The notes under the pieces: generated by a model
Told to the model about the DNA's origin: nothing
The model's database searches: none
Seen by the model: only the letters and a program-made list of their open reading frames with translations
Assembly (NCBI GenBank): GCA_047495785.1
Contig: JBLDXI010000004.1
Coordinates: 496,001-560,000, forward strand
DNA: 64,000 nucleotides
DNA from: Lepidodermella squamata
Taxonomy: Eukaryota; Animalia; Gastrotricha
Direction of reading: 5' to 3'
Translations under genes and position numbers: made by a program
In this document: piece after piece, positions 8,039-53,677 of the stretch
Layout: every line of letters starts with the position of its first letter
How positions within the stretch are numbered: position 1 is the stretch's first letter

Positions 8039-9873
8039 TTTGCTAATATTTTGTGATCACACTAGGTGACTGTTTATTGATGATGCCCGGGTTGAATCTG
8101 TTATTTCAATGTAGGGTGATTTTATGATCCGAATTCGCAATGCGCTCTCGTGTAATTCGAGTTGCGATGAGATCGAGTTGACCTCAGTTGGGTGTGATTC
8201 TTTTGATCACTTGATACTCAATAAATGGCGAGATCTTTTGATCCCAGTATTTCGTGACTTTTGCCACAGTTGTTTTTACTCTTACCTACCGAAACTTACC
8301 TTGATTGACGTAGACCGAAGTGAGACGGGTCTCGGCGCCAATATGAGACCTGGTTCAAGGATGGAAAACACTGCGGCAAACTCTACTCTCAAACCGAAGG
8401 TAAAATCGGGAAACCGAACTAATAAAACTCCAATTAATAAAATAAAAACACGAATGTAGCGACTATTCATTCCATTTATTTAATCTTCGTTCCTCAATTT
8501 AAATAAGACGGGAGCCCGCCAAACACCAGGCTAGCGTGCGACGTCAAGGTGACGCAGTGAGGCTGCGGGAGCAGACCCTCACACCCAATAATAGCGGTTT
8601 GGGTCTAGCTAGGATCTATTTTTTTACGACTGGGTAGCAGCGCTATTTGTGAGCTGATCATCTTTGCACAACAATTCTAAATATGTTGTTGTTTTCGTCT
8701 CCCAGAATAACGTGGACTTCGTTTAGTACCTACCGAACCAGTTGCACATATATGAAGTCCCCAGCTACATCGCTCCAATTCAGTTCGGCGTTACGGTCGA
8801 CAGATGCGTTGGCGTTCAGTCTTGATAGATTTCTATAGCTGGATACAAATAACTGGAAACTTTTAATGAACCCTCCGAGTTTTTGCGAATTACGTTTACT
8901 ATAGAGTATGAATAAAAAGCTTCTCTTATTACTCTGGTTTTTTTGTGGCCATTAATAAAAGCAAAGATCCTCGGTATCACGACTAAACTTCCTTTGTTTA
9001 GTAACCAACGGCAAATGGCATTAAAAGTAATTGAGCTGTTATTCATTGTCTCAATTTTAACAATCCCGTTACCATTCACTGAAGCCAATTCAAAAAGTCA
9101 GATTTCATTTCCAGTAACAGAGAATATACCACGCAATGTTTTTCATCCATTCTTCCCTGGGCTCTACATCTGGACTTTAATTGAGTCCCGATGGACACGT
9201 TACGTTCTGTAAAATGATAGCCAAAGTGAATCTGACTAAATTTTACTTTTGTCGATTGGTAAAAACAACAACCATGCAAGCTGCCCGTCTGCTACTGGCG
9301 GTGGTTTTGATCGCCGACCTAGCCATAACCTGCCCGCCAACAACGACATCCGAGGCAACTATTTGTCCTTCAGTTGTAATTTGCCCTTCTGGCACCTCTT
9401 GCTATCAGACCGCTTGCCCCAAATCAGCTTGCGCGACTTCGGTATGAAATTTCACGCAGGCCGATAATTCTTTAGTCACGTTTGAATTTTCCAGGGCCAA
9501 TTTGCTCGATGCTCTGTCAACACAAATGTCTTAGCCATTCCGGCCACTTTCTGCCTTTCAACTGGCACGTGCTCAGGAATTACAGGCGCTTCTGTAGGTT
9601 TTCACTTGAATTTGTCGAATTTCGGTCTATTTGAAACCTGTAGCCGACGGGAACGACCTCGAACTCATTCCTGAGCTGTTGTACTGGTTTGAGCGCCGTG
9701 CCATCGACCATCCAGTACATCCAGCTGGTGATCAGCAGCGCGCCAGTTGCGATGTGTATGGCCACGAACGACGTATCAATGTACAGAATGTGCAACACTG
9801 TGAGTGCCGTTACAATGACGGGCGCGTCGTGTGTTCGCTTTCCGAGTTCGTGCGAATCCGGCAAGGTGCAAAT
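7124..9873. repeat. Right arm of 2750-bp inverted duplication
   Basis: Reverse complement of 2794-5543. Confidence 0.97.
8342..8583 (-). mobile_element. 5' LTR of Gypsy-like element 1 (right copy)
   Basis: Mirror of 4084-4325. Confidence 0.7.
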
Positions 9874-10092
9874 ATCGACTGTGGCGATAGTGAGTTGAAA
9901 TTAAGTCATCACACAATAGCATTAATTGCTGGCTTTTGCATTTTACAGCAAGGTGTGATTAGTTTTGCCTACGCTAGTTTCCGTCTCTGTTGCAAAGGCA
10001 TTCAATCAGCTGCAATACATACATCGTCCAAATTCACATCGGCCGATATTCTCGGCGTTACGGTGGACTCGTGTATTGGGGTGCAAGCTTAA
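9274..10092 (+). CDS. Gene H: secreted Cys-rich protein with divergent four-Cys modules (>=4 exons; 3' end uncertain)
   Basis: Signal peptide MQAARLLLAVVLIADLAIT. Phase-0 GT-AG splicing joins GQFARCSVNT..FCLSTGTC / ..NSFLSCCTG and YRMCNTV..SCVRFPSSC / ..YASFRLCCKG, matching the module of the neighbouring genes. Confidence 0.65.
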
Positions 10093-10813
10093 TTGATATA
10101 TGGACAGCGACTAAAGCTCGCGAAATTGCGCTGTTATTAGTTTAGGAAACAACATTTCGAAGATAAGTAAAACCTTCTCAGCTGCTTACGTTGTTTCTAC
10201 TAAGTAAATCCTTTGTCTACGACACAATAACAATTGACTCACGGCCTCTTCGCCCCTTCCCAACCTGCGGTGTTAGGGATTCAGCTTACCTTCCAATTAG
10301 CGGACCCTCCAATTAGGAGCGATTAGCATGGTCCGCTGAACACAACGACGTTTTATTTCAGCGTTTCGCGGTAATTTAACAAAATTATAGAAAGCGTGGT
10401 CTTCGAAAGAGCCTGCTTGTCGTGAATAGTGATGCGCGCCGATTATTTTTTCTTTAATCGATTAAACTTCGATTTAAACTTCGATAATCGAATCGTGTTA
10501 ATCGCGATTAAATGTTCAATCGAATCGCCCGACAAATCGAATCGATTAATCGTGGGCGCTGTATTAAATTCAAGTAAAATCATAATCAGATAGTCTTGTT
10601 TTGAACGCGCTCCCAGCATTACTATCAACTCGTATCCCCAATCTGACAATTCCACGAGATTCTACGCAAAAAACCGAGTAATTCTATGTGCTATGTGTTA
10701 CTCGAAAGCAGATTCCGATTCCTCGTGAAAAACTACCTCCTCCTAGGTTTCTAAGGGGGGTTTCGACATGAAAAGAAGCGGTTTTGCCGATTTCTTTAAA
10801 ATTGTTATTTTTA

Positions 10814-11799: not shown

Positions 11800-13254
11800 C
11801 TATAGAATTTTCAATTCGGAACTTGATACAAGAACGCATTTGACCAGTTCGAACGAAGTTCCATCGACGCACATTTTGTGGGGCTCGGAAATAAAAAACA
11901 AGAAGATTAACTTTTCCTGCCTGTTCGAAGAGTGTTTATAAAGTCATAGAGGGAGAACTTTGACCGAATATGTTTTGGATTCGACTAGTTCAGACACCAA
12001 GCCTCTCAGTTTTCAATTTTTAAAGCAGTATATCACTAATACCAGTGAAGGACTGCGATAAGGTTCTCGACTCTGTTTTCGTCACTATAGGACCTTAAAC
12101 CAAGCCAAGGCGATTACCAGTGATTTCATGCAGTTAGCGTAGTTCCCGGCGAAGTCTAAATGTCGATCTAAACGTTGATAACATATTATTCCAAAAATTA
12201 TTTATATTGCCCGCTAATACTTACAACGGTCATCGGAACCGGGCATGTATTGCGGCAAACCGGGCCCGAATCAGTTGCACAAAGTCCAGCAGGCTGAAAA
12301 TTTAGACTCGTAAGTCTAACTTATTAACGGAAAATCGGCAAAATTACGTACTCCTGAGAGGCAGAGGTTTCTGTCAATGTTAGTACCTCAACTGTAAGAC
12401 TGAAAAATGACGCATTGAATGACAAACGAATGATGTATTGCTATAATCAAACTTGTGTTAGGTAGGTTGTATTACAAGGAGTAGATTACCGCCGAAAAGG
12501 ACCGGTCTCTTTGAACGAAACATCGAAGGACGGAACGAAATCAGCGTCTTTTCGGGTAACTATTTGAGAAAAAAAAACAGAAATAATCAAAAATAACCGA
12601 AGACACAAATCAAACCAACTGTTTTGCTCGTTCAAGCATGATAGTGTCGTTGGTCGGCGCGCAACCAGAGTCTGCGGTTCGAACAGAAACAAGTTTAGCG
12701 TCTCCCAGCAAATTCATCGAAGCACTAACCCCGTTGTTGGGACAATTGCCGTCATTCGGAACGCATTTCCTCTGGCAATTGCTGCTGCACAGCTTTGCTT
12801 CGATATTCTGCTCATAGAGTGATTCATCGATACAGGTATTGAAACAGTGACCATGGCTTACCAGAAAGTTCTTGATTGCGCTCTAAAACCATGACTTCAT
12901 CGGTTTTATCACATCCAAGGCAGCGTGGGATACACCGCATGTTAATCGTTTTGAAGTCGAAGCAGCTTCGAGCAAAAGCAAAAATTAATCGCTATTGGAA
13001 CCTTTTTTCAACGCATCCCAGCTGAGCAGTATTCAAGAGATGGCAGAGAGTAGCCACGCTAGAAAAAATTACGAAATGATCAACTTGAACCAATCCCCAC
13101 ATCCTCAACTTGCTTGAACTTCATCAAGAAATGAGCAGTTCGTTTTGCAGCCAGTAAATGAATCATTCAAGCGTGAGAAGCAGCGTTTGTATTTGGCACT
13201 CGTAGCCGCCACAGCAGTTAGAAACATAAATAAATTCCGAATAAATAGGGCCAT
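11800..13254 (-). pseudogene. Gene A: divergent Cys-module paralog, possibly pseudogenised (3' end approximate)
   Basis: Signal peptide plus KRCFSRLNDSFTGCKTNC. Later exons read CFDFKTINMRCIPRCLGC, KCVPNDGNCP, NIDRNLCLSG and GLCATDSGPVCRNTCP. There is an apparent in-frame TGA at 12388-12390 and a poor exon-2 donor. Confidence 0.55.
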
Positions 13255-14257
13255 GATCTGGGATTTTAAATGTTTGCATGCCAAACATCGGCCGATCATC
13301 AAATTTTAAATTGTCCGAATGAACAAATTCACGTCATCCACGCGATGACGTATCGAGAATCGGACAAAAATTGGGTTCGGACAAAAAACAAAGCCGCGTT
13401 TTCGTCACAATTCATTCACCACTTCGACCTGGTTTTGACAATGGACAATACAAGAGCAAAATTGTTTTGGGATATAACTCATTTCATGTTTTGTTGGCGA
13501 GAAAGGTTAGGTCAGGCAACTGTTGAGCCGTTCACCAACGTCGAAGCTACAGTGGATGAAGCACGATATCCTCGAGGTTTCCGAATAAATCAAACCAAAG
13601 GGTCCCGTTTTTTGGGGGCTTCTCGCCCGGAACTACCCTCCGTACCCATGTGTTGACTTCACTGATAAATTCAGGGCAAGAATGGCATTGATTGGCAACA
13701 TTGATTGGCATTGCGTCGTGTGAGCTTTTGAAGATAAAAAAAGAAACAAATTATTGCATATTTAAATAGTTTATTTTGCAATAATTCTGCGTAATTTATT
13801 GTGAAGCAAAACGAATGCGATCAGTTTGAGTAATAGCTGAGAGAATGCAGAAGCACAAATAGATTGTGAAAATAGATTGCATAATTGTGATGAATATGAT
13901 AAGATTTAGGAGTTTTCTCTAACATCTAGCAGGTTTGAATATTTCTAATAGATATTGATTGTTAACGGCTGAATGAGGATTCGGAAACGAAGGAACTAGA
14001 GACCCGCCTTGGGCTCTTTTGATTTCGGCCAGGTAACGCACCGGTTTCCGGTTTTCGCGAAGCACCAATACTAAATCGTTAAATAATTCGTTTTTTTATT
14101 CGATTTCAAGAGAGTGTTTCTTCGGCATTAACATTTTATAGCTTCATCTACTTTGTCTTTCATACTTTCAACTATTTTCATAATTCAAAACTTGAGGCAT
14201 ACGCATCCAGCTCGAATTCTTCTCGCTGTCTCGCAGACGTTCACGGCAAATTATAGC

Positions 14258-17200
14258 TCAAACATTTTCATAGTATTTCATAGATGGAGCGAAATCATAT
14301 TGTTCAGTCTGCCAGCGCCACTCGCAAAGAGCCTTGTCCGAGCCGGCTGATGTAGCGGTGCATGCTCGGTCGACCAGCTCAAGGCACCCCGATTCGCGTG
14401 TCACGTCAGCACCGCAAAGGCCCACTTGATTTCGCCTAGGCCTACCCGACTGCCACGGCGGAATACCAGCATACGGTGTGCCATCACCCCACAGCCACGT
14501 GCCGTTCAATGTCCACAGATCAACGTTAGCCTGCATGATGTCAAGGCGAAACATGACAGCTTGAGCCGCTCGTCGCTCTGCCTCGCTTTTAATTCTTGCC
14601 AAATACCACATACCGCCACTTTCATCAGTAAGCGGCTTGAGATGGTTTGGACAATTGGCTCTAAATGAACCTGGCAAGTCTGCTGGGTTCGAAATCAGCG
14701 CAGTAGTCATGAAAGTCTGTGATATCAGAAATAAAGAAATTATGGCTAATGGTGAATCGGGTCTCCGATTCTCGAATAAAGATTCATCGGTGGAATAAAA
14801 GTAAGTGCCATCTCTAGCTTTGTATACAATATTTCGCTTATGATCGAAATTCGCCAAATTTCTGTTCCTATTTATGAGAGCACTAGGACGTCGAAGAGGC
14901 CTTAATCAACGCGACACGCAACCCATACGCCCATGTTACTATTCAAGGTAGGTTCTGTGATCTATGATCTAGGGTTTCAAAATTTACCGAATTTTATCAA
15001 TGATCGCACTAAATATTCACATTTTATCTCTATTTCATAAGTAAATTCCGTTATCTGGAAATACCTGATACATATAAATTTAGGTCAAAAGGGTCAACGA
15101 ATCTTCAGAGGTTACAGAATTTTCCAATCCATTTAAATTAGGAACTAAGATGATAGAAGACATGCTAAAACTGACCATACCTTCTTGAATGGAAAGAAAG
15201 TTTCACATAGTGCTGGCAGATAAAACTTATTGAGACTGCTGTCTAAAATCCTAGCATATCCGCTGCTGTCATCCATAAAATAAATACCATCCCGCATATA
15301 ATACGAAGATAATGGCGGCAAACCATCGGTATATACAACCCCATCGAGCCAGCTGAAACTACCAAGCGATCGCATAAGACCGAAAGTAGCACGAGTACAT
15401 GGTTCTCCCAGGAAAGACCTCAAAGACTCCAATTCGGATGAGGATCTAACACTCGCCACCATCGCATTGTTATCGGCGCATTGTTGTTGATACTCTTCAA
15501 TTGAATTAGGGCTACCTATTAGAAGGTATCCCTTAGCTGCTTTCTCGCAGCTATCCGCGTCAGGATAGGTGAACGCCGGAATAGTGCGCTCCTTGTCAGC
15601 ATCACAGCCCGTTGCATTCGACACGCATCGAACGGCATCATCATAATTCGCCACACAACGGAGAAGGGCAGGCTAAATCATGAAAATTAAGCAATAATCA
15701 ATGGAAGCCCTGCAAATAGGTAAAGGTTATCTATGTTCTATGGGTTCAATCATAGTTTATTAACAACAAATCGCATTCGAAAATGGCAACTCACAGCTAT
15801 ATCTTTGATGCAGGTGTCATGATTGAATTCGAAGTACTCATCGTCGATGTAGATTTTGACCTTCCGCGTTGAAACAGCTATACGATGTAATATTGTATTT
15901 GAGCTGCGACTTTACCTGTGTGGAATTTTGTGGGCAAACGGCGTGACAATATTGGCTACCGAAAGCATCAACGCATTGAACAGCATACTGTTAAGGGTTG
16001 AGATTAACATCACAGCTACAAAATTATACTAGGACTCTACCCCATGTTTGCAGTTGTAAAGGTTGCTGTAGACATTGATCGAAAACTGTCGAGTCTCATT
16101 GTTAGCCTTACAGCCACTTGCTTGTGGTCGGCAGGCGGTGTACTGAAGTGTTCTGGTATCGAAACAGCGAATGTGAGGTTTCTCGCTCGCCGGAACGCGA
16201 ACTTTAAAAGTGTATGAAAGCATCATGAAGATTTGTTTGAAAGTATATTAGCTATGAGAATAGATTTCGCTCGAGAACAACATATAGAGATCAAGGACAT
16301 GTGATTTAGCATGTAATTGAGCCCTAGCCCTCAGACAGGAGAATCCTTAAATTTGAACAAAATTCCGAGACCAAAGGCACTCTATTTCAGTCAATTCAAT
16401 GTCAATCGAAAAAACCCCGCAACTGTTCAATATTTGTTAGGAATTCGGAATAATAACCAAGTCTCATGATTGAAAAGGGATTCTTACGTGATCCGTTGGT
16501 GCATAAACTCAGGTTAGAATATATAAATTTCTCTGTGACCTAAAAAGTTGAAAAATATTCGAATCAATTTAAAATGTAAGAGACAATCATTATACATAGG
16601 GCTCTGGACAGGTAAATGGATCAGGCACGCATGTTATGATTGCTTTTTTCGGCGGAATTATGCACCGCCGGAATTCCAAATTCTAATCAAAAGAAACAAG
16701 AGTCATTATACAATTATGACGTATAACGCGTTATAAGTCTTACCGCAAATTCGTCTTTCTTTTGCTCGCATAGTTCAAAAGAACGTTCAAATGATCCATT
16801 TACAAACAGGAAACTCTGGAAAAAACAGGAAATGAATCTGGATCTAGGATCTATGACCAAGTCAGAATTTTCTTGGAATTTGGGTAAGAATGGGCTTTTG
16901 AGAGAAGAATTGGTGGGCAGACCGCCATAAATAACAAATACGCAAAACATCTAACATGTTTCAACTAACACATCTAACACATAACATATGAAATTCCCTC
17001 AGCTATTTCACAAAGTATTTATCGATTCAATCAAAATTAGCATATTCGAAATTACTTAAAAGCCCTGTGAGCCAATAAGTGAATTCTTTCTGAATTAGGT
17101 CAATTACATTTTATATTATATGAATTACGAGTGCTATATCGTAAAATATTGCATGAGCATGGGTACTAACACCATTTTTGAGCGAATGCTATATTTGGGC

Positions 17201-17867
17201 TGCTAACATTTCAACCTCGAAATTTTGAAAAATTTGAAAATTGATTTTTGGCGAATCGCTCATTTTTGTATAATCGAACCGACTTGACCCCTCAACCGTG
17301 GGCTACTATTACGGTTTGGCGATTATTGGAACAAATACGGTAATTTCTTTGCGAAGGGATATTGAGATACAGGTACAGGCTTTTGATTTGTTATGAAAAT
17401 GAACAGTGAATTGTTGTTTTATTAATTACTCACATTGATTTCGCTTGATAGATCACATCCGAGTCTACCAGGGACGCAACGCGGCGTGACATCCTTGTAT
17501 TTGTAGCACATTCGAACACTCTACATAATGGTATTGTATGATTGCTTTCGACAGAAAGTATGGCGAGTATTACCAATCCTTCAGGGAAATCAGCTGTTGT
17601 GTTACGGCATAATTTAGCTCCGTAGTAAACTTCGTCAATCTGAATAAAAGTGATATTGAATAAAGAAGGATTATCGTTAGTCGAGAATCGAACGTCGTAT
17701 TCGACGAGTAGATCACAGCCTTGCTGCGCGTCGGCGCAACGCTTGAATCGGTTGTTCAGCCGTGAATAACACCTAACAAACGGATCGTCGGCGCCCGCAT
17801 CTACAGCTGCTAGTTCGATCAGCGTGACAGTTAACACAAGGAACAGCGCAAAATAATATCGAGCCAT
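14258..17867 (-). CDS. Gene B: secreted protein, six four-Cys modules + two CTLDs
   Basis: Signal peptide MARYYFALFLVLTVTLIELAAVDA and module exons homologous to genes C-F. CTLD1 is in 15145-15654 (FGLMRSLGSFSWLDG..ALCE) and CTLD2 in 14258-14720 (WLWGDGTPY..KALCEW). Confidence 0.85.
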
Positions 17868-18530: not shown

Positions 18531-21486
18531 ATGGCGAACCTTTCTTGGCGTGGACTGTCTTTTCTGCTGCTGGCGCTGCTGGACCTGGCAGCTGTTGCTG
18601 CTGTCCCGCAACTTAGGTGTTACTCGCAGCTGAACAACCGCTTCAAGTCCTGCGTTGATGCTACGGTGCGATGCGATCCTCTCATCGAATATCAAGTACT
18701 TCTCAGAAAATTCAATTTATGTTATGCACTGATAATGCTAATTTTCAGGAATTCACTGTCTACCCCAGTCATAGCGTCTGCAACCAAGGCGTGAGAATTG
18801 TTGGATTTATTTGTTGAATTGAAAATAATAAATCTACAAGTAGAGTTACCAAATGTGCTACAAATACGATGCCATCACGCCTCGATGCGTCCCAGGAAAT
18901 ATTGGCTGCGATCTGGTGTTCGAAATGAACGTAAGGTTGTTTTGGTAAAATTCGACAAATTGGTAACAGTTTATTTCTGGATTAAATACTCGAATAATAT
19001 AAATAATTATCGAATAGGCTTGAATAATTATATTCGCCAGCCATCGCACCTTTGAAAATGCTTTCAGGCCCGTGACCATTTCTAAAATTAGTTTTCGCTA
19101 ACTGTAAACTGTAAATTTGGTTCCAGTAAGCAGTAAAAGGAGGACCTTGACATATTAAAGTATCATTTTTCTAATCTGTTTATCAGCTCTTTTTGTTCGC
19201 AAACACGACCTTCAAAAACTCGTCCAACGAATGCGAACGCAAGAAAGATGAATTCAAGGTAAGACGCTTTCAATTAAACCGCTGATTGATCGTGACGTTT
19301 TTCTACCAACTTCGAACCAGAATCTGCTATTTCAGCGCTGTGCGTCAGGAAGCGAAACTAAAACCTGCGTTCCCTATCCATACACCTGTCCAAAAAGCTG
19401 GGTAAATCTGCTTTGTCAACGATGGAATGGGTTATCAGCTTTTACTACAAACTTTCAGCTGATAGCAAAAAAAATAACTAATCCAATACATTTTGAATGC
19501 TTTATTTTCACAGACTACGGAAAAGCTTCTGTATCAGAACCTAAGCTCTTGTATCAACGGATCAGGTAAGGTTTATTCACCTACAAAATTGTTGCCAATA
19601 TTCAATCTTCAATCTCAATATCAGTTGTTGTTCCTGTTAGCGAGAGACCGCACATTCGCTGCTTTGATGCTACAACACTTCAGTTTACCACCTGCCGACC
19701 ACAAGGACATGGCTGCTTCGCCAACAATGAGACTCAACAATTTTCAAAAAACGTCTACAGCAACTTTTACAACTGCCAATTTGGGGTATTTTTATCCCTA
19801 TCTATTTTACAGCGATTTTTCATTCCGCCATTTCCACAGAACGCAGTTCAGTGCTTGGATGGTTCGGGAACCAAGTCCTGTCACGGCATTTGCCCACAAA
19901 TCTTGACGGAGGTGAAATTGAAGCTCAAGTTGAGATAAAAAGGTGTATTTATACTGTTAATTTTCACATTACAGGCCAAAATATATTCTAGCGATCAGAC
20001 TTTTCAACGTAATCACGAAAGCTGTATCGAGGATATCACTGTAAGTATTTTTTATTTTGATAATATTTGATTTGAAGGGTTTATCAAAATAATAAATTGA
20101 GAACCCCATTCAAGTATGATAAGGAGGATCTTAAATTTTCCGCCTATATTCGTGTATAAATTATACAAAAATACCTATCGCCGAAATTTGCAAATGAATC
20201 GGAATCAGAATTACCTCAAAAATCGACTTTACGGCGTTTTGAAAACTCGAAAACTCTATTTATTTTTTATTTTATAGCCTGGATTTTTCCGTTGTGTGGC
20301 GAATGTTGATGCTTCGGTTCGTTGCGTGTCGAATGCAACGGGCTGTGAATCTGCCAAGGAACAGCAAATCCCGCCAAATTGCGCATACTCGAACGCTGGC
20401 AGCTGCCGGAATGCCACTAAGGAATTCTTCTTAGTCGCTGGAAGTCAATCTTTAGAGGGCTTCAAACAGCAATGCATCGATAACAACGGAATGCTGGCGA
20501 CTGTGAGGACATCAGTCGAATTGAAGACTCTGAGGTCCTATCTTACTTATCCCGTTGAAAAGGCCGTCATCGGCCTCATCCGGCTGAATGGCGTTTTCAA
20601 ATGGCACGATGGATCTAGCTACATCGATGGCTTGCCGCGAATCGCTCCTTATTATCTGCCAGAGGGGTTGTATGTGATTGATGATCGAGAAGACAAAGCA
20701 CTTGCTCGCCTCGCACCTGCCCTCAACAGCACCGGTTCTCGGGCACTTTGTGAGACCTTCGTAACCCCAAAAAAGGTGAGTATTACAAATGTGGGATTAT
20801 TTTTCAACCTAGCAAAGGTCCCAGCTGGGAACCGTCTCCAAGTCTTAAAGAATCCTGAAACTTCACTTTTCGCCGCTATCAGTGAGAGTAGGATCCCCGA
20901 AAATGTTAGATCAAAGGTTCCCTTTTCCATTTGCAGTTTTTCGGGTTTTCTTGCCTGGACCTCTCGATTGCTAATGTTGCCTAATTTCCTTTTTGTCCAT
21001 CACAGTTATTCCAGTCGACACAACTATGGCTTCCCAAGGACTCTAAAAGCTTACAAACTCCAGCGAGGGACAGTTGTAGTAAACATATCAAAGCGCCTGT
21101 GGTCTGTTCCTCTACAAGGAAGTGTGAAGTTGGCGCAAGTTGGCGGTTGGCACGAATCAAAAACGAGGCAGATTTTCAAGCGGCTCAATCTGCGATGTTG
21201 AGGTATGCCATCACCGAGGCTTACGTTGATCTTTGGAAAGCTAACAATGGCACGTGGCTGTGGGGCGATGGCACGCCCTATGCTGGCATTCCGCCATGGC
21301 AGGCCGGCAAGCCGAGCGTGAATCAGCCTAGGCTGTGCGCAGCTTCGGCGACCATGGAATCGGGGTCGCTTGCTTGAGCTGGTTGATCGGCCTTGCAACG
21401 TGCAATTATGCAAAGTCTACGGTGATTGGAACATATCTTGCCAGCCGCATAATCCTCCTAATGAAGTGTTGTGCGAATGGAACTAA
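18531..21486 (+). CDS. Gene C: secreted protein, six four-Cys modules + two CTLDs; second CTLD frameshifted
   Basis: Signal peptide and exons colinear with gene B. CTLD1 reads IGLIRLNGVFKWHDGS..ALCE. A 4-bp GCTT duplication at ~21368-21375 stops CTLD2 at 21377; the paralogous frame ends at 21486. Confidence 0.8.
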
Positions 21487-22238: not shown

Positions 22239-24172
22239 ATGATTGCTCATATCAAAGCTTTGGCGTTACTGCTGATGCTGCTGGCGTTGGTCGACATGGC
22301 TTGGGGCCAGAAGCCGGACAACTGGGTTCGGTGCTTCTCGCAATTCAGCAACCGATTTACCAGCTGCTTACTAGCTGCCAATGGCTGTGATGTACTCACC
22401 GAATATCAGGTTTGAATTGATTCAATTCGCTAGAAATAGCCTCAAAATTCAATTTTCTCTGCGGATAGCTGGGTTCAATTTTCAAAAAGGACGGCGTCTG
22501 TTATACAGGGGTTGGTCAATTTCTCTCCGAAAAGAATGCTTAAAACATATTTGATTTTTCAATTTTAGAATGCTCGGATGTGCTACAAATACAAAGCTCT
22601 AACCCCGTATTGCGTACCTGATAATATCGGCTGTAATAACCCGGGGCTAATGAGTGTACGCTTCAACTTTCTTATTTCTGTCAATTATGTAAGAAACATA
22701 TTTTCAATTACAGTTATTCCGGTTCAGCGATCAGACTGCGACGTTGAGCTTCAAATACAACATCAACGAATGCGAGAAGAAGCGAGCTGCTTTTGAAGTG
22801 AGACATTGTACTGACTGCTGCGATAGTTCATGCTTTGCGATTTCCCTAGAAATTACCATTCAGGCGATGCGTTTCTAACAATGCCATCCAAACCTGTGTT
22901 CCAGACGCGTTCTCTTGCCCCGAAAATTGGGTATGATGTTTTGCTATTATTCTGTTATTTTGAAAAAATCGTTGTTACATTCCTGAAATTCTCAGGATTT
23001 TTTAAATTCGAAATTTTTTCAAATCACTCAAAACGTTTATTATGAAACTTAGAATTGAGAACTCAACTTTTTTCAGGTCACCAACTCGACGCTGTACTCT
23101 AATTTAACGTTGTGCATCAACGGCGCAGGTGAGTCTGGGAAAGACTGATACTAACTCGATTGATATTCCTTTATGTTTATAGTCAGTGTTCCAGTTAGCG
23201 AGAAGTCGCACATCCGTTGCTTCGATTCAACGACTGGGAAATTCAAAGATTGCCGGCCGCAAAGCCCTGGCTGCTTCGCCAACAATGAAACCCAGAAATA
23301 TTCGACCCAAGTTTACATCAACAGGGACGCTTGCCTGCTTGGTGTAAGTGAAGCCATGAGTATTCGAAGCTTAATCATTCGCTGTTTCGTAATAGAATGC
23401 CGTCTCGTGCAAGGATACATCCAACCGAACGTCTTGCTACGCAATTTGTCCTCAAGATCAAACTCAGGTGATTCACAATGTGTTACCCATTTTCGGCTTG
23501 TATCATCAGCTTCTTTGCTACGGCAGGCAAAACTGTTCTCTGGATTGCAGACCTTCCAACTCAATCACGACAAATGCATCCAGGATATATCGCCTCCCGT
23601 AAGTTTACTGCTCTGGTTCTTCCCAATTTTTGAAAATCCCTGTAAATTTGTCTCAGTCCGTCTATTTCCGTTGCGTCGGCAAGAGTGACGCGGCTGTTCG
23701 TTGCGTGGCAAATACAGCTGGTTGCAACGCGGCTACTGAACTTCGCATTCCGGCTTCTATTGATTATGTTGACCAAACGAGCTGTCAGAATGCGACCAAG
23801 CGGTACTTTTTAGTGGACATGAACGATAATATACAAAGCGTCGCCCCGTCGAAATGCGCCGAGGTCAACAATGCTGCGCTGGCTTCGATAAGGTCGGACG
23901 CTGAGTTGGCTGCTGCTAGGCAAGCGGTGTCGGCAGCGGGCATTTCCGCTGCGTGGATCGGCCTCAGCCGCCAGAACGGCGTGTTCAAATGGGACGACGG
24001 CTCAGATTTCACGTACGTTCAAGCTCAGTGGGCTATGGCCAATGGCGATGGTTGTGGCTTTTTGACAAAACGTGATCTAACGGACGGATTTCCAGCTGCA
24101 GATTTCTACTACGCCCTGACAACGTGTTCCAGCAGGGGAGACTTTGCCTTATGCGAGACATTTTCTTCATGA
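22239..24172 (+). CDS. Gene D: secreted protein, six four-Cys modules + one CTLD (10 exons)
   Basis: All ten exons splice in frame with GT-AG introns. Signal peptide present. Terminal CTLD reads WIGLSRQNGVFKWDDGS..GCGF..C..ALCE. Confidence 0.9.
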
Positions 24173-25196: not shown

Positions 25197-25251
25197 CAGG
25201 GTTGGGGCTGTTTAAACAGGTCCGAAAATTTTGAAAAAACAGGGTTTAAAC

Positions 25252-26822: not shown

Positions 26823-27093
26823 TAGTGAAAATCGGTTGCACAAAACTGACGAAAAATGCAGATTGCACCAAAATGCTGCTTAATTTGGCACCTCCACTCT
26901 GAGGTATTTAGCAAAAACTTTCAAAATTCACCATTTAAAAGTTGCTCATTGCGCTTTTCTACAAAAATTTTTGCCTGAAAAATGGTGAATTTTGAAAGTT
27001 TTTGCTAAATACCTCAGAGTGGAGGTGCCAAATTAAGCAGCATTTTGGTGCAATCTGCATTTTTCGTCAGTTTTGTGCAACCGATTTTCACTA
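26823..27093. repeat. Fold-back inverted repeat, 114-bp arms with 43-nt loop
   Basis: 26823-26936 is the reverse complement of 26980-27093. Confidence 0.9.
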
Positions 27094-27645
27094 GGGTCCG
27101 TGGCGTGCCAGTCCACGTCTACTATTATTTCAATCGAGTTTGACCCATCTTTCTTGGGTCGTCCTCGAGAGCCGTCGGTTTTTTTCCTAATAGTTGTTTT
27201 TGATGTGAGGCCTACTTTAATTAGGCTTCTTTCTACGCATTTTAACCAATAAATTTGAGGTTTTCCTACTGGCCTGACCCAACCTTCTGGAGTCTGCCAT
27301 TTATATATGTCGTACACTGGGCCGGGTTCGAGAGGCTTTCCATTTATGTCTAAGTAGGTTTGCATCCTTATTATGTGGCCAAGATAATTGAGACGTTGTT
27401 TTTCTATTAATCTACTCACTTCTATCACGCCGCCGCACATTGAGAGTCTTATGTCTATATTCGGAATATAGTCCGTAACAGTTATTCCTAAGATGCATCT
27501 AAGCCACTTATATTCGAGTGTGTTAAGGTTTCTTTCATGTTCTTCGGTCAAATTCCAGGATTCGCTAGCGTACATTAGTGTCGGAATTATTACTCAACTA
27601 AGTATTTTCAGTTTAATTCCTAGAGATACATGATTTCGGTTGCAC
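27094..27645 (-). mobile_element. RTE-clade LINE 3' ORF fragment
   Basis: PTLMYASESWNLT..LRCILGIT..RLNYLGHIIRM..RPVGKPQIYW, the typical post-RT region of RTE-like elements. Confidence 0.8.
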
Positions 27646-42269: not shown

Positions 42270-42956
42270 ATGGCGAGCACGACTCTGCAAGCTAAACTGC
42301 TTAAAATGGCTGAAGACGAGGCAATTTGTGACTTGGTTAAGAAACTCGGATTTTCAGTGGCTTCGATGCTGAGTGACCTGATCTCCATCGAATCTGAAAG
42401 GAAAGACGAAATAATCACGGTAACCAAACAATATCAACAATTTGTTGACGAAGTCAAAGAAGATACTGCTTATGCGGCTGATAACGTGATCGACTCTGTC
42501 AAACAAGCGTCCTATGAGATCAGGAATGGCGGATGCCTGATCACCGCCGTCCACGAGGCCCTTTCCCAACGGGACAGGGCGAACAACATCGTTATCTCCG
42601 GACTGGAAGCGCCAGACGGTAATACCGTCATAGCCTTATCTGACCTGGTTGCAAATCTCGGCATCCTGAACTTCGATGTCAAAGAACGCATAATACGAAC
42701 GAACCTGATCACGAGGGAAAACCAAGATCCTAAAATTATTGTGCAGCTGAAATATGCCTCCGACAAACGTCTGTTTCTGGAAAAAGCCCCCCAACTTCGC
42801 AAAAAAGCTGGGTGGGAGTCTGTGTTCATTAGCAAGGACCTGACCCCTGCTCAAGCTAAGATCGAGTTTGAAAAACGGGAGCACAACAGACGCCAACGAT
42901 CGACTGGTGCGCCGGTAAAGAAAAACCTGGTACCTCCTCAACCGACATCACCTTAG
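42270..42956 (+). CDS. LINE ORF1 (CR1-type)
   Basis: Coiled-coil followed by RANNIVISGLEAP..PKIIVQL..VFISKDLTPAQ, typical of CR1/L2 ORF1. Confidence 0.85.
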   Translation: MASTTLQAKLLKMAEDEAICDLVKKLGFSVASMLSDLISIESERKDEIITVTKQYQQFVDEVKEDTAYAADNVIDSVKQASYEIRNGGCLITAVHEALSQRDRANNIVISGLEAPDGNTVIALSDLVANLGILNFDVKERIIRTNLITRENQDPKIIVQLKYASDKRLFLEKAPQLRKKAGWESVFISKDLTPAQAKIEFEKREHNRRQRSTGAPVKKNLVPPQPTSP

Positions 42957-45803
42957 GAACCTGGCGCCCTGTCCGTTGCTGACAAGAAAAACAGTAATGA
43001 AACTATTAACTTCCCATGCTACTTGATCAACACTAGACAGCTAACAAATCCGTATAAAGTTTCTCTGTTATTACTCAATCTCCTAACTACAAATGTAATC
43101 TTTGCCTTTATAACTGAAACGTGGTACAATGATGATTTCAATTCTTCCTTCTTCGAAAATAATGGATATAAGGTTCATAGAGCTGACAGAACAGACCGAG
43201 AACGTGGTGGATCCATGCTACTCATTCACAAATCTTACGAATCCACCCTTGTAGCACAAACCTCGATTAAAGGATACTGTGAGATTGTTATATGCGACGT
43301 CCTCATTAATGATATAAAGTTACGTCTGTGTTGCACTTATAAATCTCCTAGCGCCGATAACACTGTTACGGAAGAAATGTGTAGCTTTATTGAAGAGCAT
43401 CTAACCGATACTTTGTTTGTACTAGCCGGTGACTTCAACTTTCCGGACATCAAGTGGAATAACCTCACTCACTGTGGCGGAGGGAAAGAACAAATGTTTA
43501 TCAATCTTGTTAATGATATTAATTCCAGTCAACTTGCCACGGAACCAAACGGACCTGAACATAAAAACATTCTTAATCTTATCATTACAAATAACCCTAT
43601 GTCAATCAACAATATTGTTACTGACAAATCATTCGAGCCTACTGATCATTGTACAGTTAAATTTTCTATTAATCTCAGCGGTGTTACATCTCTTAATAAT
43701 GATGACAATAGATACATCGATGACTATCTCAACGCTGACTATGACAAAATATCGAAATTACTTCTGAGTTATGATTGGGACGATCTACTATCAACGTGCA
43801 ATGATGTGAATGAACAATATGCGCTTTTCTTATCAATATATACAGATATTTGTGATAAATGCATTGTAAAAAAACTTGTCAAAAGCAAATACCGTTTACC
43901 ATGGTGCAATCGCGAGCTACATAGATTAGTTAGACGGAGAGACCGAGCCTGGTCGAAGTATACTCGTTGCGGCAAGAAAAATGACGATCTAAATAAATAT
44001 TGCAAAATCTCTCGTAAGACTATAGCTTTAAATAACTCTCTAAGAGAGTCATATGAAACACAACTAGCTAACACTAATAATATGAAAAAACTGTGTAAAT
44101 ATGTGAATAACCATATGAAATTTAAATCTAGAATACCTTCAATACTTGTTGACGGCGAGACTATCTGTGATCCCTTGAAAAAAGCTGAATTATTTGCGAA
44201 GTTCTTCAAATCTCACTTTACTCTTGACGATGGCTGTAAATTAAATGTACAAAACAAACCATGCGTTGTAAATGACTTATATTTCTCAGAACCCTCAATT
44301 ATTGAAGCTCTTAAGAAAATAAAAATAAACTCTCCAGCTGGCCCTGATCTTATAAATCCATACTTTGTTAGCAAAACTGTAAATGCTCTAGCTAAACCTT
44401 TATCTATAATCTTTAACTCTAGCTATTCTTCTGGTTCTGTTCCATTCTTCTGGAAATTAGCCAATGTAACGCCTGTATTTAAAAAAGGCTCACCTAATCT
44501 TGTTGACAATTATAGACCAATTAGCATTACCTCTCTACCTTGCCGTATAATGGAATCAATTATAAGAAAACAATGGATAAGAGTATTACTTTATGAAAAA
44601 ATAATATCCTACGAGCAGTTTGGTTTTATATCTGAAAAATCGTGTGAAACGCAACTATTAGACTGTTTAAATAAATGGTGCGATCTTGTAGACAGAGGAA
44701 TGACACTACACTGTATATACTTCGATCTTTCTAAAGCCTTCGATACGGTCCCACACGCTAAACTTCTCGATGTCTTAAAATCTTTCAATATTAATGAATG
44801 TTTATATAATTGGATATCATCTTTTCTAACAGGACGTAAATTTCGCGTAAAAATACATAATTGCTTCTCTGAATTGTACGATGTGACCAGCGGTGTCCCA
44901 CAAGGGAGTGTCTTGGGCCCCTTGCTATTTTTATTGTATATAAATGACTTACCAAAATATATCAAATTCAGCATCATTCGTCTATTCGCCGATGATATTA
45001 AACTATTTCCTCATACCTCCTTAACTCCTATTGATCAAAGCACCAAACGTTTTAGCTATGAATATATCCAAAGAGACGTTGATAATATTGTAAACTATCT
45101 CAAAGAACGCCAGCTTATTTTGAACCCGGACAAATGTGTTGTTTTGAAAATTAATACTACTGAATGTGTAAATATTGTAATCGGACAAAAATATCTAGAA
45201 TGTGTGGATGAAATTAAAGATCTGGGTGTTATTGTTGACAGCCGTCTGACTTTCTCCAGCCAATGTGCCAAAACTGTTGCTAAAGCCAGAAAAATATGCG
45301 GTATGATTTTACGCTCGTTCCAAACGAAGAAAACTGAAATACTAATGAAAGCCTTTGACATTTATGTGCTACCCATCTTACTCTATTGTAGTACTGTTTG
45401 GTCTCCAAGACTAATTGGCGACCAAAAGTTATTGGAAGGTGTGCAAAAAACGTTTACCTGGCGCGTGATGAAAACGCATGACTACGAAAAAAGACTTCTA
45501 AAACTTAGCCGCTTAACTATTATTCAGCGTCACTTGGTTAGAGATATATGTGTAACTAATGATATATTGAAAGACAATGTTAATCTAGATACGAAATGTT
45601 TTTTCGATGTTAAAAAATCAAACTATGATACACGTAGCCATAAATATTTTCTCCTAATGCGTAAATCTCATCTTGATGTGCTATTTCATTTCTTTAGCTT
45701 TAGAGTTATAAATAATTGGAACAAATTGCCAGCCTTTATTATAGATATTAATGATCGACTAATCTTTAAAAACCATATAAAAAATATTATTACAAAAATA
45801 TAA
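42957..45803 (+). CDS. LINE ORF2: APE endonuclease + reverse transcriptase (CR1 clade)
   Basis: ITETW, GDFN and TDH (APE); NYRPISITS, GVPQGSVLGPLLFLLYINDL and FADD (RT); FFSFRVINNWNKLP C-terminus; (TAAAC)n tail ending at 45950. Confidence 0.95.
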   Translation, partial: EPGALSVADKKNSNETINFPCYLINTRQLTNPYKVSLLLLNLLTTNVIFAFITETWYNDDFNSSFFENNGYKVHRADRTDRERGGSMLLIHKSYESTLVAQTSIKGYCEIVICDVLINDIKLRLCCTYKSPSADNTVTEEMCSFIEEHLTDTLFVLAGDFNFPDIKWNNLTHCGGGKEQMFINLVNDINSSQLATEPNGPEHKNILNLIITNNPMSINNIVTDKSFEPTDHCTVKFSINLSGVTSLNNDDNRYIDDYLNADYDKISKLLLSYDWDDLLSTCNDVNEQYALFLSIYTDICDKCIVKKLVKSKYRLPWCNRELHRLVRRRDRAWSKYTRCGKKNDDLNKYCKISRKTIALNNSLRESYETQLANTNNMKKLCKYVNNHMKFKSRIPSILVDGETICDPLKKAELFAKFFKSHFTLDDGCKLNVQNKPCVVNDLYFSEPSIIEALKKIKINSPAGPDLINPYFVSKTVNALAKPLSIIFNSSYSSGSVPFFWKLANVTPVFKKGSPNLVDNYRPISITSLPCRIMESIIRKQWIRVLLYEKIISYEQFGFISEKSCETQLLDCLNKWCDLVDRGMTLHCIYFDLSKAFDTVPHAKLLDVLKSFNINECLYNWISSFLTGRKFRVKIHNCFSELYDVTSGVPQGSVLGPLLFLLYINDLPKYIKFSIIRLFADDIKLFPHTSLTPIDQSTKRFSYEYIQRDVDNIVNYLKERQLILNPDKCVVLKINTTECVNIVIGQKYLECVDEIKDLGVIVDSRLTFSSQCAKTVAKARKICGMILRSFQTKKTEILMKAFDIYVLPILLYCSTVWSPRLIGDQKLLEGVQKTFTWRVMKTHDYEKRLLKLSRLTIIQRHLVRDICVTNDILKDNVNLDTKCFFDVKKSNYDTRSHKYFLLMRKSHLDVLFHFFSFRVINNWNKLPAFIIDINDRLIFKNHIKNIITKI

Positions 45804-46649: not shown

Positions 46650-47269
46650 TCAATCTAGCTCAATTATTTCCTCTCGGGATGAGCTCGGTGAAACTCGACC
46701 ATGCGAAGAAATATCCGAGACCAATGAGCCATTGGGCGAATTGTTTACCTGCGAAACTGACGAGCTTGCCTTCATCGAAGCCCGCCTTCTGTGCTGATAG
46801 GCATGCTTGCTGAGTTGAGACGCATTGTCGAAACGCTGCAAACACGCGAAGCATGTGACGGCAAATTTATCGGAATGGCGAGTTCGAACGTGATAGCGAA
46901 AACCGTTTAGGGAAGAATATGCCCTTCGATTAGGACAATATTCGCAAACGAATCCGAAATTTCGATTTTCTGCATGACTCAAATTGTAGGAGGTGGAAAG
47001 AGGTTTGACCTAAAGATAGTAGAAACACCTATACAAGACACTGGACAAGTATAACTTTTTACCGAAGGTGAATCATTGTAACAGGACGATTTAAATGAGT
47101 TCTCCGCAGCTGAATGGAAAGCTGAAAGCCTATCAGAGCTGGGTACGGCAGAGTTTTGCTTTGGTATAGATAGAGCCCACGGAGCTAGTGTACTAATCGA
47201 TATAATAGTCACTTTAGGAGAGGATCTACTCCGCGATAGGTTCAACGGCTTAGCATCAGTTTCATCCAT
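46650..47269 (-). CDS. Two-finger C2H2 zinc-finger protein, paralog of 32989-33649
   Basis: CEYCPNRRAYSSLNGFRYHVRTRH and CFACLQRFDNASQLSKHAYQH; N-terminal PLNLS; phase-0 intron at ~47011-47062; ends EIIELD*. Confidence 0.82.
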
Positions 47270-48053
47270 TTTCAAAGAGTTATCTGGTTTCTAGAAACAA
47301 TGTAAAAAAATTAACATAAAATTAGAAAATAATAATTATAAAAATAATAATTAGAAATAATTAGAAAATAAAATAATTAGAAACGCTAATAACTGTGAAA
47401 CTTCATGCTATATATGACTTGAAAGGGAAATCGTAAACATTTGGTCCATGAGAAAAATTTGGTGATAAGTTTAGAAATTCTTTTTCGGTTTGTTCACCGC
47501 ACTTGAAGGGAAGATTTAGCGAAGTTAGCGACATTGGCTAGAAACATATTTTAATCGCGTCGCGAGTCGTGAAAAATCAGTTAAGCTGTTGTTTTAATTT
47601 TGTAAAAACGGATGCGATATAATGCTGCTTGCAAGCGTTATTCATTGACGAACACTACGTTTCAGGAAATACAAACGTGTTAAATTGAAACGGCTGGGCA
47701 CGCGATTGCTACGTGGCATAAAATTACAACTGTTTTGATGGCGCAGCGTTTTTTGAACCTGGCCGACCTTTCTAGGCCAAACGCATGCAGTGACCAGCTA
47801 CTGAATTTCACCGAAAATTAATTGTGAGATTGAAAATTATTATAATTTGAGGTACGATCAAAATCCTTTGAATCGAAACACAGTTCGAGTCCAAAGCCAG
47901 CTACAAAAATTCCGTAAAAATTGCCCGGCGTCTTAAATTTATTGAAATCACGTAATTTTTATCATTTATCAATTCATGTTTTTTTAATTATTTTATGGAG
48001 TGCTTGAAATTACTTGCATTTTTTATTTTTATCTTATGTTTCTAAATTTTAAG

Positions 48054-48215
48054 GGTTTAATGATGATAGGCATGTATCAAAATGGCTTGAACCTGAAATG
48101 GGTTGACGGGTCGGGGTACATTTTCGTCGTAGCAAGCTGGTTTACCCGCGATCAATCACTTTGCTGCTTACAAATGATGTATAATGCTGTTCTCAACCGC
48201 TTGGTGCAATGCTGA
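48054..48215 (+). pseudogene. Isolated CTLD exon remnant
   Basis: IGMYQNGLNLKWVDGSGY..W..C aligns with IGLSRQNGVFKWDDGSDF of genes D/E; premature stop. Confidence 0.5.
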
Positions 48216-50029: not shown

Positions 50030-50078
50030 ACCTGATAGCTTATTGTACGCCGCATCACATTTCAATGTAGGGTCATCA

Positions 50079-50490: not shown

Positions 50491-51867
50491 ATGTGATTGC
50501 GCAACATCTATAGCATCTGACCGGAAAATTTTTCGGCCAAAATGTTGCCAACAAATATAGACGCAGCTTTACCCATCCCCGAGGCCTTTAAAAGTGCACC
50601 GCTTTTTTGAAATCGAATTAGAAACAATAATTGATGGACGGAACGACGCGACAGTGTCAAAAAATGTAACATCACCTGGTCAAAAAATATTTTGACTACG
50701 GCATCGAGCAATGTCTCAAATTGAAGCTTACATGGTCAACAACATTTAAACATATTAATATTACATAAGCACTTTCAACTGTCGTCAAAATGTTGTTGGG
50801 AAAAATTCCATCTTTTGGCATTTCGTCAATGTCAAATGTGTACCATTTTTGACAAGGTAAAAATCATGTTAACTGACAAAACTGACTATAGTCATATATA
50901 TTTTCTGAAAGCTCATGTCCAGGGCTTTCTGGAAATATATAAATTTCTATCTAAATCGCGAATTTTTTTTCCGGTGGTCAGGTTGACAGTTACACGTTTT
51001 TACCACTTTTTCAATCACCGATAATCGATAATCGATAATCGATTCGATTATCGATTATCGATTATCGGTGATTGATTTCCATGATTCGGGTGATGATTGG
51101 TCCAATTTCATGGTGATTTTTGAGTTCATCGCATGAAAATAACCAAGTATCACTGAAATCAGCATAAAATCGCAATATTATCGATTATCGATAAATCGAT
51201 CGATATCTGATCGATAAAAATAAAAATCATCCGATCGGCACAAAAATTATATTGCTGGAAAGTACTGTTTAAGGGGATCTCGAAAATCAAAAAATCTTTC
51301 ATCTCGGATTTGTTTTGAGTGATTTATGACAGTTTCAATTTTTTCGCTCGAGATGACATTTTCTTGGCCGCACCCACACACTTTCAATGAAGAATCAGTT
51401 TAATTGTCCGCATTCAACTCAGTTTACATATTTTTTTCAAACAATAACAAAACAAAAAAATAAAACAAAATGGCCACAGAATTCTGTCAATTAAAAAAGA
51501 AAGTTAATTAAAATGTACCAATAATCCATCGAGGCGAGATTTTTTTGTATCAACTTTTTTTTTAAACCAGTTTGTTTTAAAAAAAGCTCCAATGATTTTC
51601 GAAATTCAAATATGCGTGCCTAAAAATCTTACGGCGTCACAGGAGAACGCGTGTCGTGAACATCTGGCGAGAAGAACAAACCGTATAGGCAGCGATATTT
51701 TGATAAACAACTCGTGACTGCGTTTTCGGTGTAGTCGGACAACGGACTAGCTAATGCGTTGTAAGAAAAGTCACGCGATCGCCTGGAACAGGACATCAAA
51801 ACAACACGTTATTCTCTCCGATTCTTCAAATATTTCAAACAATATTTTGCTCGGTTAACCACAACAA

Positions 51868-53677
51868 ATGACTGCTTTTCACAACTCTTTGCTGTTAATG
51901 CTGATGCTAGCGAAAAGTGACGTTGCTTGGGGCAGTAAGCCGTTGAACTGGGTTCGATGCTTCTCGCAGTTTAGCAACCGATTCACCAACTTTATTGAAG
52001 CTGCCTCTGGCTGTGATCCACTCAAAGAATATCAGGTTTTCCGTTTTAATTAGTTTCAATTGCTTGGAAATTAATCTTCTCCCTTATCAATAGTGGGGCT
52101 CCGTTTTCCGAACAGTCGGCGTCTGTAATACCGGGGTTTGCGGTCGATCATCTTTCTGTTTACGTTATATTCCATTTCTCCCTTTATTCGATTTTAGAAT
52201 GCCCGAATGTGCTACAAATACGCGGCTTTGAGCCCGTTTTGCGTGCCTGGAAACGTCGGCTGTAACAACCCGGGTGATATGAATGTAAGATTCGATAGAA
52301 TCATCAGAAGTATCTTAATAATTGATAATTAAATAATCGTAAAAATGTTAAGAAATTAGGAATTATTATTTTGAATAGTTTTCTGATTTTACGACAATTT
52401 TCGTTTTGTCTTTCAGACGTTCTGGTTCAATGATCAGAATGCGACGTTGAGCTTGAAATTCAACCTAAACGAATGTGAGAAGCAACGAGCTGTTTTCGAT
52501 GTGAGTACTTCGCTAATGTTATGACGTCATAGTTTTTTCAAATCTGTAATTATTAGAAATTGCAATTTCGGCGATGTACTTCAACCAACGCCATTCAAAC
52601 TTGCGTCCCGGACCCTTACACCTGCCCCAGCAATTGGGTTAGTTTCTAAATGTTGTCCATTCTCAACATTTTTATAGCAATTTGTTGTTTTATTCAATGT
52701 TCTGTTTTCACCTAGGTAACTGAATCAACGCTTTACCCAAATTTAGCTTCCTGCATCAACGGCACAAGTTAGCCCTCCCCTTTTTCTCGAGGATTTCTTT
52801 TGCAATTATTTCCTGGTGTAATAAATTGATCTTATTATCATGATTTTCAGTGACTGTTCCAGACAGCCAGAAGCCGCACATCCGCTGTTTCGACTCATCT
52901 TCTAGAAGATTCAAAGACTGCCGACCGCAAAGCTCAGGCTGTTTCGCTGGCAATGAAACTCGGCAGTACTCGACAGGGGTGTACATCGATCGCGATACTT
53001 GCCTGGTCGGAGTAAGATTTCGACGAACTAATCTGCTCGGCATTGTTTCGTATTTTTGAACAGAATGCTGTTTCCTGCAAAGATTCATCTGGGAAATTCT
53101 CCTGCTATACAGCTTGTCCTCAGGATCAAACTCAGGTAAAGCTCGACCATAGGCCAATGTTTCTGGTATTGGGTGCTTTCGTCTCAATTTAGGACAAGCT
53201 TTTCACTGGATTGGAGTCTTTTCAACTCAATCACGACGCGTGCTTGAGGGATATATCTCCGGTAAGTTTTATAACATGCAAATCTGTAATTCTTTGTAAT
53301 CTTTCTTTACAATACAATAAGTATTTCGGGCTATTTGTATTCAGCGACAAAGCATTCCCCTTGTAGAATGTGTCAAGCTTAATGCAACGCTAGCCACGAT
53401 CAAGTCAGCCGATGAGATGGCTATCGCATCGATTGTGATGGATGATCCGGAGTTTGGTTACATATACGCCTTCTGGATCGGCCTCACTCAGCAACAAGGC
53501 GTTCTGAAATGGGACGATGGTTCCGACTTCACGTATAACGATGCGATGTGGTATGGGCCTCGAGCCGATGGGTGCGTTGTTACCATCTTCAACTCCGATC
53601 CAGTCGCCGGATATCACTTCAAAAGCGTTCCATGTGATGGTGCTTTCCCACAAGTTCTATGCCAGAAGCCTTCCTAA
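51868..53677 (+). CDS. Gene F: secreted protein, five four-Cys modules + one CTLD
   Basis: Exons are homologous to D/E but the sixth module is absent. CTLD reads FWIGLTQQQGVLKWDDGS..GCV..C..VLCQ. The last acceptor is uncertain (~53344). Confidence 0.82.

Follow-up and report, generated by a model that had tools for sequence, protein, structure and literature searches.

The window analysed here is a stretch of 64,000 nt from the gastrotrich Lepidodermella squamata (assembly GCA_047495785.1, contig JBLDXI010000004.1, positions 496,001 to 560,000 of the forward strand). It contains a cluster of genes for proteins that combine a signal peptide, a row of small modules with four cysteines each (modules 1 to 6, M1 to M6) and mostly one or two C-type lectin-like domains (CTLDs). 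A first annotation made from the letters of the sequence only (the original prediction) had counted at least seven such loci, H and A to F. We scanned the window in six frames for the cysteine pattern and searched it by tblastn with the protein of gene D. Collinear sets of similar short exons were found at six places: 12.6-13.3 kb and 14.3-17.9 kb on the minus strand, and 18.5-21.5 kb, 22.2-24.2 kb, 29.9-31.9 kb and 51.9-53.7 kb on the plus strand. Five of these loci (B to F) are solid and one (A) is marginal, while locus H had no support from hidden Markov models (HMMs). The module peptides quoted as examples in the original prediction were all present on the plus strand where it had placed them, at 22.3-23.4 kb, and strings like them are found again at 30-31 kb and 52-53 kb.

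The paralogs were modelled with a template-guided exon finder and the models were then curated by hand. They bore out the expected architectures of six modules and two CTLDs for B and C, six modules and one CTLD for D and E, and five modules and one CTLD for F. Genes B and C are arranged head-to-head with their start codons about 660 bp apart. Locus A is found downstream of B, and the four genes from C to F share one orientation. When an HMM of all 29 modules was run against the six-frame translation of the window, it matched the expected exons of B to F with E values of 1e-23 to 1e-5 and gave nothing convincing elsewhere. Protein identity between the paralogs ranges from 85% (D and E) down to 39% (B and F). 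Genes B, D, E and F have full open frames over 10-11 exons with canonical splice sites. Each protein has one hydrophobic segment, located at the N-terminus, with no further one and no hydrophobic tail, and the proteins are therefore taken to be secreted and soluble. We conclude that the cluster is a real, lineage-restricted gene family that is at least partly expressed.

Gene D was followed at the level of RNA. Its introns are all of the GT..AG type, with lengths of 52-146 nt; intron 6 is in phase 1 and the others (1-5 and 7-9) are in phase 0, so that the predicted count of eight phase-0 introns in nine was correct. Module 4 is encoded by a single exon (exon 7), and module 6 shares exon 10 with the CTLD. 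We used the public run X1, a small run classed as probable RNA that holds 35% of the sampled words of the window. Contigs of X1 join the gene D positions 22409/22469, 22510/22569, 22655/22714 and 23128/23183 at GT..AG sites, and further pieces or loose ends are consistent with the exon junctions 5/6, 7/8, 8/9 and 9/10. The depth of X1 was zero across the introns and across all of gene C. Since nothing was recovered from this neighbouring gene, the X1 material is spliced RNA and not DNA. The splicing model of gene D, in which a signal peptide, six modules and a CTLD are joined into one open reading frame (ORF), is supported by these transcripts; the contigs follow the proposed splicing and do not depart from it. 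Some X1 contigs differ from the gene D exons by 5-10% or run after exon 9 into a sequence unlike exon 10 (within 22320-23600). This suggests that further paralogs with other downstream exons are expressed from elsewhere in the genome.

The other members of the cluster differ in their state of preservation. Gene B has an open frame with all AG/GT sites in place; its modules were matched by the module HMM at E values of 1e-18 to 1e-8 and both of its CTLDs by the CTLD HMM. In gene C, the second CTLD (CTLD2) shifts frame near 21366 relative to gene B and continues in another frame after 21365. A DNA contig of the run X2 matches the gene C stretch without differences. The shift may mark gene C as a (young) pseudogene; otherwise it would come from an indel in the assembly or from one that the assembly's source data share. 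Gene E is a young duplicate of gene D, and gene F is without module 6 and the first CTLD strand.

Locus A was analysed with position-specific HMMs, which matched three collinear exons: M1 at 13108-13305 (E 0.002), M2 at 12827-12991 (E 2e-5) and M3 at 12613-12882 (E 0.3). The general module HMM gave a marginal match (E 0.004). Its signal-peptide exon carries a module-1-like first half, RCF-x9-C-x3-C. The CTLD HMM found no CTLD there or downstream, in line with the prediction, and locus A stands as a diverged partial relative and not as a full locus. Exon 1 has a predicted GC donor at 13114 (minus strand) in a GCAAGT context, which may point to an intron of the rare GC-AG type or to decay of the locus.

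Table 1. Positions of the genes, tracts and neighbouring features in the window
Feature	Position	Strand	Description
Gene B	14258-17867	-	11 exons, 595 aa: signal peptide, six modules, CTLD1, CTLD2
Gene C	18531-21486	+	about 589 aa, six modules and two CTLDs, exon model
Gene D	22239-24172	+	10 exons, 1338-nt ORF, 445 aa: signal peptide, M1-M6, one CTLD
Gene D, exons 1-5	22239-22409, 22469-22510, 22569-22655, 22714-22797, 22850-22930	+
Gene D, exons 6-10	23077-23128, 23183-23343, 23396-23467, 23527-23598, 23657-24172	+
Gene E	29947-31937	+	same 10-exon plan as D, 446 aa; exon 9 ends at 31363, canonical GT donor at 31364
Gene F	51868-53677	+	10 exons, 382 aa, five modules and one CTLD
D/E identical tract	23310-23534	+	225 nt: end of exon 7, intron 7, exon 8, intron 8, start of exon 9
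Locus A	12613-13299	-	diverged, apparently truncated relative; signal-peptide exon, module-2-like and module-3-like exons
Locus H	9274-9895		cysteine-rich, secreted-looking ORF; mirror copy at 2778-3393
Inverted repeat	2794-5543 and 7124-9873		arms of 2750 nt, spacer of 1580 nt
Element-like ORF fragment	27033-27575	-	between genes D and E
ORF1-like ORF	42270-42956	+	228 aa, precedes the 926-aa ORF
Retrotransposon ORF	43023-45803	+	926 aa, Exo_endo_phos_2 and RVT_1
Weak module match	47136-47192	-	second half of module 1 HMM, E 0.017
Weak CTLD match	47988-48212	+	family CTLD HMM, E 0.005
EGF-like gene	55330-57556	+	several EGF-like exons

The four-cysteine module and the lectin-like domains

Cutting the proteins at their cysteine quartets gave 29 modules of 40-51 aa (about 43 aa) with the spacing C-x8-10-C-x6-C-x16-26-C; in module 5 the spacing is C-x8-C-x3-C-x22-C. 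Exactly four cysteines are present in all 29 except for module 1 of gene F, which has no second cysteine (Cys2), and module 6 of gene C, which has one extra. Modules 1, 2, 3 and 5 are each encoded by two exons, the first with three cysteines and 4-7 further residues, followed by a phase-0 intron and then the fourth cysteine. Because the modules are split 3+1, the skipping of a single exon would leave an unpaired cysteine, and only pairs of exons could be skipped harmlessly.

The relationship among the modules was examined with position-specific HMMs. Modules at the same position in other paralogs scored above 100 bits, and modules at other positions scored from 0 to about 18 bits. For modules 1, 2, 3, 4 and 6, the cross-position scores are at least as high as the top score among 5000 composition-matched shuffles (17.2 versus 13.9 for M4 to M1). 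No similarity of module 5 to the other modules was detectable by HMM sequence scores. Since similarity at the same position far exceeds that between positions, the array of six modules appears to have been in place before the genes were duplicated, and its internal repeats would then be old.

For module 4, AlphaFold was run with an alignment of nine sequences. The best model reached a predicted local distance difference test score (pLDDT) of 83.4 and a predicted template modelling (TM) score of 0.62, with the five models spanning pLDDT values of 47-83. In the best model, the strands of a hairpin bear Cys1 and Cys2, short extended segments follow and a C-terminal helix surrounds Cys4. Module 6, modelled together with the CTLD at a pLDDT below 50, showed the same order of elements.

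Relatives of the module were sought in Pfam, the PDB and fold collections with the intron-free modules 4 and 6 (profiles of 45-53 aa), and modules 1, 2, 3 and 5 were analysed by local comparison only. Pfam at E<=10 gave nothing for module 4 or module 6 of gene D or for nine M4/M6 copies, save noise (CHCH 0.16; Circovir2_Orf4 0.1), so that EGF-like, WAP and ShK domains and any other Pfam-A family, including domains of unknown function, were without a match to M4/M6. The PDB sequences at E<=10 had no match to the M4+M6 profile. A HMMER search of 1.84 billion representative proteins with the same profile returned two spurious matches only (P0001 and P0002). Both are bacterial surface-repeat proteins and were dismissed because their scores add up over many repeat copies. 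A word-indexed search of a collection of 15 billion proteins with module 6 and CTLD1 of gene C gave no matches, and a metagenome scan with module 4 gave 86 pattern matches, none of which was confirmed. With the M4 model, Foldseek found only noise in the PDB (best E 2.7) and in the AlphaFold DB clusters (best E 2.5), the Atlas shape search reached a TM score of about 0.5 on short unrelated pieces only, and the VIA fold search had no match above noise. A literature search for a CTLD-associated four-cysteine domain found nothing relevant. Within the reach of these tools, the module is without a match to an existing family, as had been proposed.

A resemblance of module 4 to the C-terminal half of Kunitz domains had also been suggested. 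Kunitz/BPTI domains are of similar size (about 50 aa) and disulfide-rich, and the module model has a C-terminal helix. Against this, Kunitz domains have six cysteines with another spacing, Pfam Kunitz_BPTI did not match, and the Foldseek comparison gave TM scores of 0.26-0.32 at a root-mean-square deviation of 7.6-9.5 Å. The resemblance was rejected.

The CTLD identity of the C-terminal domains is clear. Pfam Lectin_C (PF00059) matched exon 10 of gene D with 35.1 bits (cut-off 22.6) and exon 10 of gene C with 23.3 bits; CTLD2 of gene B taken alone was without a Pfam match, yet it aligns with the other CTLDs. The family CTLD profile matched 92 CTLD chains in the PDB, including DEC-205, PLA2R, MRC1, CLEC10A and CD69, and these matches begin at about profile position 45 and never cover module 6. 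When the model of exon 10 was compared with the PDB by Foldseek, the top 50 were all CTLDs with probabilities of 0.82-1.0; the TM scores were only 0.35-0.55 because the quality of the model was low (pLDDT 59.7). The four canonical cysteines, forming the outer and inner disulfides, and the WIGL motif are kept in D, E and F, whereas CTLD1 of B and C is without the inner pair and WIGL. None of the motifs EPN, QPD, WND, EPS, QPN and EPD was found anywhere in the five proteins, which confirms the predicted absence of EPN/QPD and WND. Going by established CTLD biochemistry, canonical Ca2+-dependent sugar binding is therefore unlikely.

Evolution and possible role of the family

Substitution rates were calculated by region according to Nei-Gojobori. 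For the modules, dN/dS was 0.20-0.22 in the pairs D-E, D-F, E-F and B-C, and the modules are under purifying selection. For CTLD1, dN/dS was 0.64 in the young pair D-E and 0.23-0.33 in the older pairs (0.23 for F versus D and E). The dS values were 0.2 for D-E, about 1 for D or E versus F and about 1.5 for B-C, and dS was saturated between the two subgroups. Nucleotide identity between D and E is about 85% through exons and introns alike. A windowed alignment showed 98-100% identity in the region of the identical tract (Table 1) and about 85% elsewhere, and this tract is probably a recent patch of gene conversion, judging from the pattern of identity. The birth-and-death pattern proposed for the cluster fits these data: the duplicates are of unequal age, domains were lost (module 6 in F, CTLD2 in D, E and F), C is frameshifted and A has decayed.

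Taken together, our preferred reading is that of a lineage-restricted tandem family of secreted soluble proteins, in which a chain of two-disulfide modules is followed by one or more non-canonical CTLDs; we give it a probability of about 65%. The product would be a secreted soluble glycoprotein made of a signal peptide, five or six modules (about 43 aa and two disulfides each) and one or two C-terminal CTLDs. The module chain could serve as a rigid disulfide-stabilised stalk or as a secondary binding surface that displays the CTLD, as EGF and CCP domains do in selectins and thrombomodulin. Ligand binding by the CTLD would be independent of Ca2+ and probably directed to a non-carbohydrate partner. 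Duplication, domain loss, gene conversion and decay may diversify the gene set.

The module itself may be an undescribed extracellular domain family, a reading to which we give slightly less than even odds. It might also form a new small disulfide-stabilised fold, in which a beta-hairpin bears Cys1 and Cys2, the third strand is short and a C-terminal helix bears Cys4. On this view, the module would be confined to one poorly sampled animal lineage, would have spread there to dozens of genes in several clusters and would serve as a stalk for Ca2+-independent CTLDs. Several points weigh against the preferred reading and against the novelty of the module. The empty word-indexed search indicates that the organism's own proteome is absent from the 15-billion-protein collection, and the protein collections as a whole seem to lack it. 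The module profiles are short, and in the library of 1.8 billion proteins they can pick up only fairly close relatives. Little weight can be put on the failed fold searches, since the AlphaFold models are shallow (pLDDT 47-83 for M4, below 50 for M6). Novelty was judged by sequence, sequence-profile and fold searches, not by profile-profile comparison, in a poorly sampled lineage. What links module 5 to the other modules is its cysteine count, size and exon structure alone. RNA support comes from one small run and covers gene D only, as gene B was not detected in X1 and gene C had zero depth in this one run examined. Finally, the function of the family is wholly inferred.

Another explanation for the module is descent from a known small disulfide-rich domain by strong divergence or truncation, the source being either the first two fingers of a three-finger domain (Ly6/uPAR/snake-toxin/activin-receptor) or a Kazal/FIMAC-like domain. 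Short-chain three-finger toxins have an R-I-C-F-like start and the spacing C-x13-C-x6-C-x16-C; module 4 begins in a similar way, and its four cysteines are spaced much like the first four of such proteins. Kazal/FIMAC-like domains have a comparable Y-x-N-x-C motif with a helix behind it. In addition, the Atlas language-model neighbours of module 4 all belong to the three-finger clan (Toxin_TOLIP, UPAR_LY6, ecTbetaR2, Activin_recp, QVR and DUF753) with scores of 0.71-0.80. However, language-model scores below 0.9 are leads only, one third of shuffled proteins reach 0.8, and module 6 had no three-finger neighbours (top score 0.55). The Pfam search of the nine M4/M6 copies at E<=10 gave no match to UPAR_LY6, Toxin_TOLIP, Activin_recp or Kazal. 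Three-finger domains have 8-10 cysteines, four core disulfides, three fingers and a C-terminal CN, whereas the module has four cysteines in two disulfides, no third finger, no C-terminal CC-x4-CN and no match by Pfam or fold, and the model places Cys4 in a short helix that is foreign to three-finger domains. We regard a descent from one of these known domains as distinctly unlikely.

The proteins could also be structural or secretion products (mucus, adhesive, egg envelope, cuticle or another matrix), with load-bearing or cross-linking modules and a matrix-binding CTLD. This would agree with the observation that the modules and not the CTLDs are best conserved (dN/dS 0.2), with the loss of the sugar-binding residues from the CTLDs and of the inner disulfide and WIGL from CTLD1 of B and C, with the unpaired cysteine in module 1 of F, which could bond between molecules, and with the secreted EGF-like/CTLD-like gene that adjoins the cluster. 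On the other hand, the copies vary in their number of domains and, in the youngest pair, CTLD evolution is faster (0.64); both observations fit a diversification of ligands better than a bulk structural role. Nothing separates recognition from a structural function decisively, and a role in structure or matrix has to be kept as an alternative, if an unlikely one. A further possibility, that most of the gene copies in the array are dead or that exon prediction produced an artefact, is very improbable. The frameshift of C and its lack of RNA, the fragmentary state of A, the loss of module 6, the first CTLD strand and one cysteine in F, and the restriction of transcript support to gene D would be in keeping with it. 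Yet the gene D model agrees exactly with the spliced transcripts, and the frames of B, D, E and F stay open across 10-11 exons joined at canonical splice sites. Every unsaturated pair has a dN/dS of about 0.2, and all 24 module cysteines are kept at protein identities of 39-85%. This explanation is largely refuted by these observations.

Compared with known systems, the preferred architecture of a secreted module chain with a terminal CTLD is closest in kind to selectins (CTLD-EGF-CCP) and to thrombomodulin and CD93 (CTLD-EGF repeats), which likewise are extracellular and combine a CTLD with a chain of small disulfide modules whose edges coincide with exon edges. In contrast to these, the CTLD is C-terminal here, the modules are N-terminal and there is no transmembrane segment. 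The modules are also neither EGF nor CCP domains, given their four cysteines, their spacing and the lack of a Pfam match, and are mostly split by a phase-0 intron. Lineage-specific expansions of CTLD genes in invertebrates, such as that described for bivalves (PMC10140915), are likewise tandem and of mixed ages with domain gain and loss and frequent loss of EPN/QPD and WND. In the present family, the partner domain is an unrecognised one, and the six modules have been conserved together as one array. Should the module prove to be a new domain family, it would merit a Pfam/InterPro entry, which would allow dozens of unannotated genes in the genome to be annotated, and it would add a partner to the known CTLD architectures. 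Within 45 kb, the cluster illustrates birth-and-death evolution on a small scale: it contains copies that were duplicated at different times, genes that lost domains, a probable tract of gene conversion and one copy in decay. Lineage-specific cysteine-rich modules fused to CTLDs are already familiar in invertebrate genomes, and the value of the present case is mainly descriptive for now.

Locus H and the surroundings of the cluster

Transposable elements occupy the gaps of the cluster, and retroelements fill the approximately 20 kb that separate E from F. In this gap, a non-LTR (long terminal repeat) retrotransposon ORF with Exo_endo_phos_2 and RVT_1 domains is preceded by an ORF1-like ORF, and an element-like ORF fragment lies between D and E (Table 1). 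Two isolated weak matches to the family HMMs were also recorded in the element-rich gap, one to the CTLD and one to the second half of module 1. They may be relics of a destroyed family member or may have arisen by chance.

Beside the cluster lies a gene of a different secreted family with several EGF-like exons. Pfam matched EGF_2, hEGF and EGF at 55330-55653 and EGF_2 at 57374-57556. Its exon at 56583-56987 looks CTLD-like by eye, without a Pfam match.

Locus H, which had been assigned to the family as a carrier of the module, was removed from it: at E<=10, neither the general module HMM nor any of the six HMMs for single module positions gave a match. It is a different cysteine-rich, secreted-looking ORF. 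By eye, its second exon ends in R-M-C-x12-C-x6-C, and this ending was probably the source of the assignment. The locus lies in the right arm of a perfect inverted repeat (100% identity over 2750 nt), and each arm contains a copy of locus H and a partial LTR-element gag (zf-CCHC, Retrotrans_gag). Beyond the arms, the copies are still similar yet diverged, and the donor site about 15 nt further on is kept in both. Either an older inverted duplication whose core was homogenised or a palindrome of the assembly would explain this.

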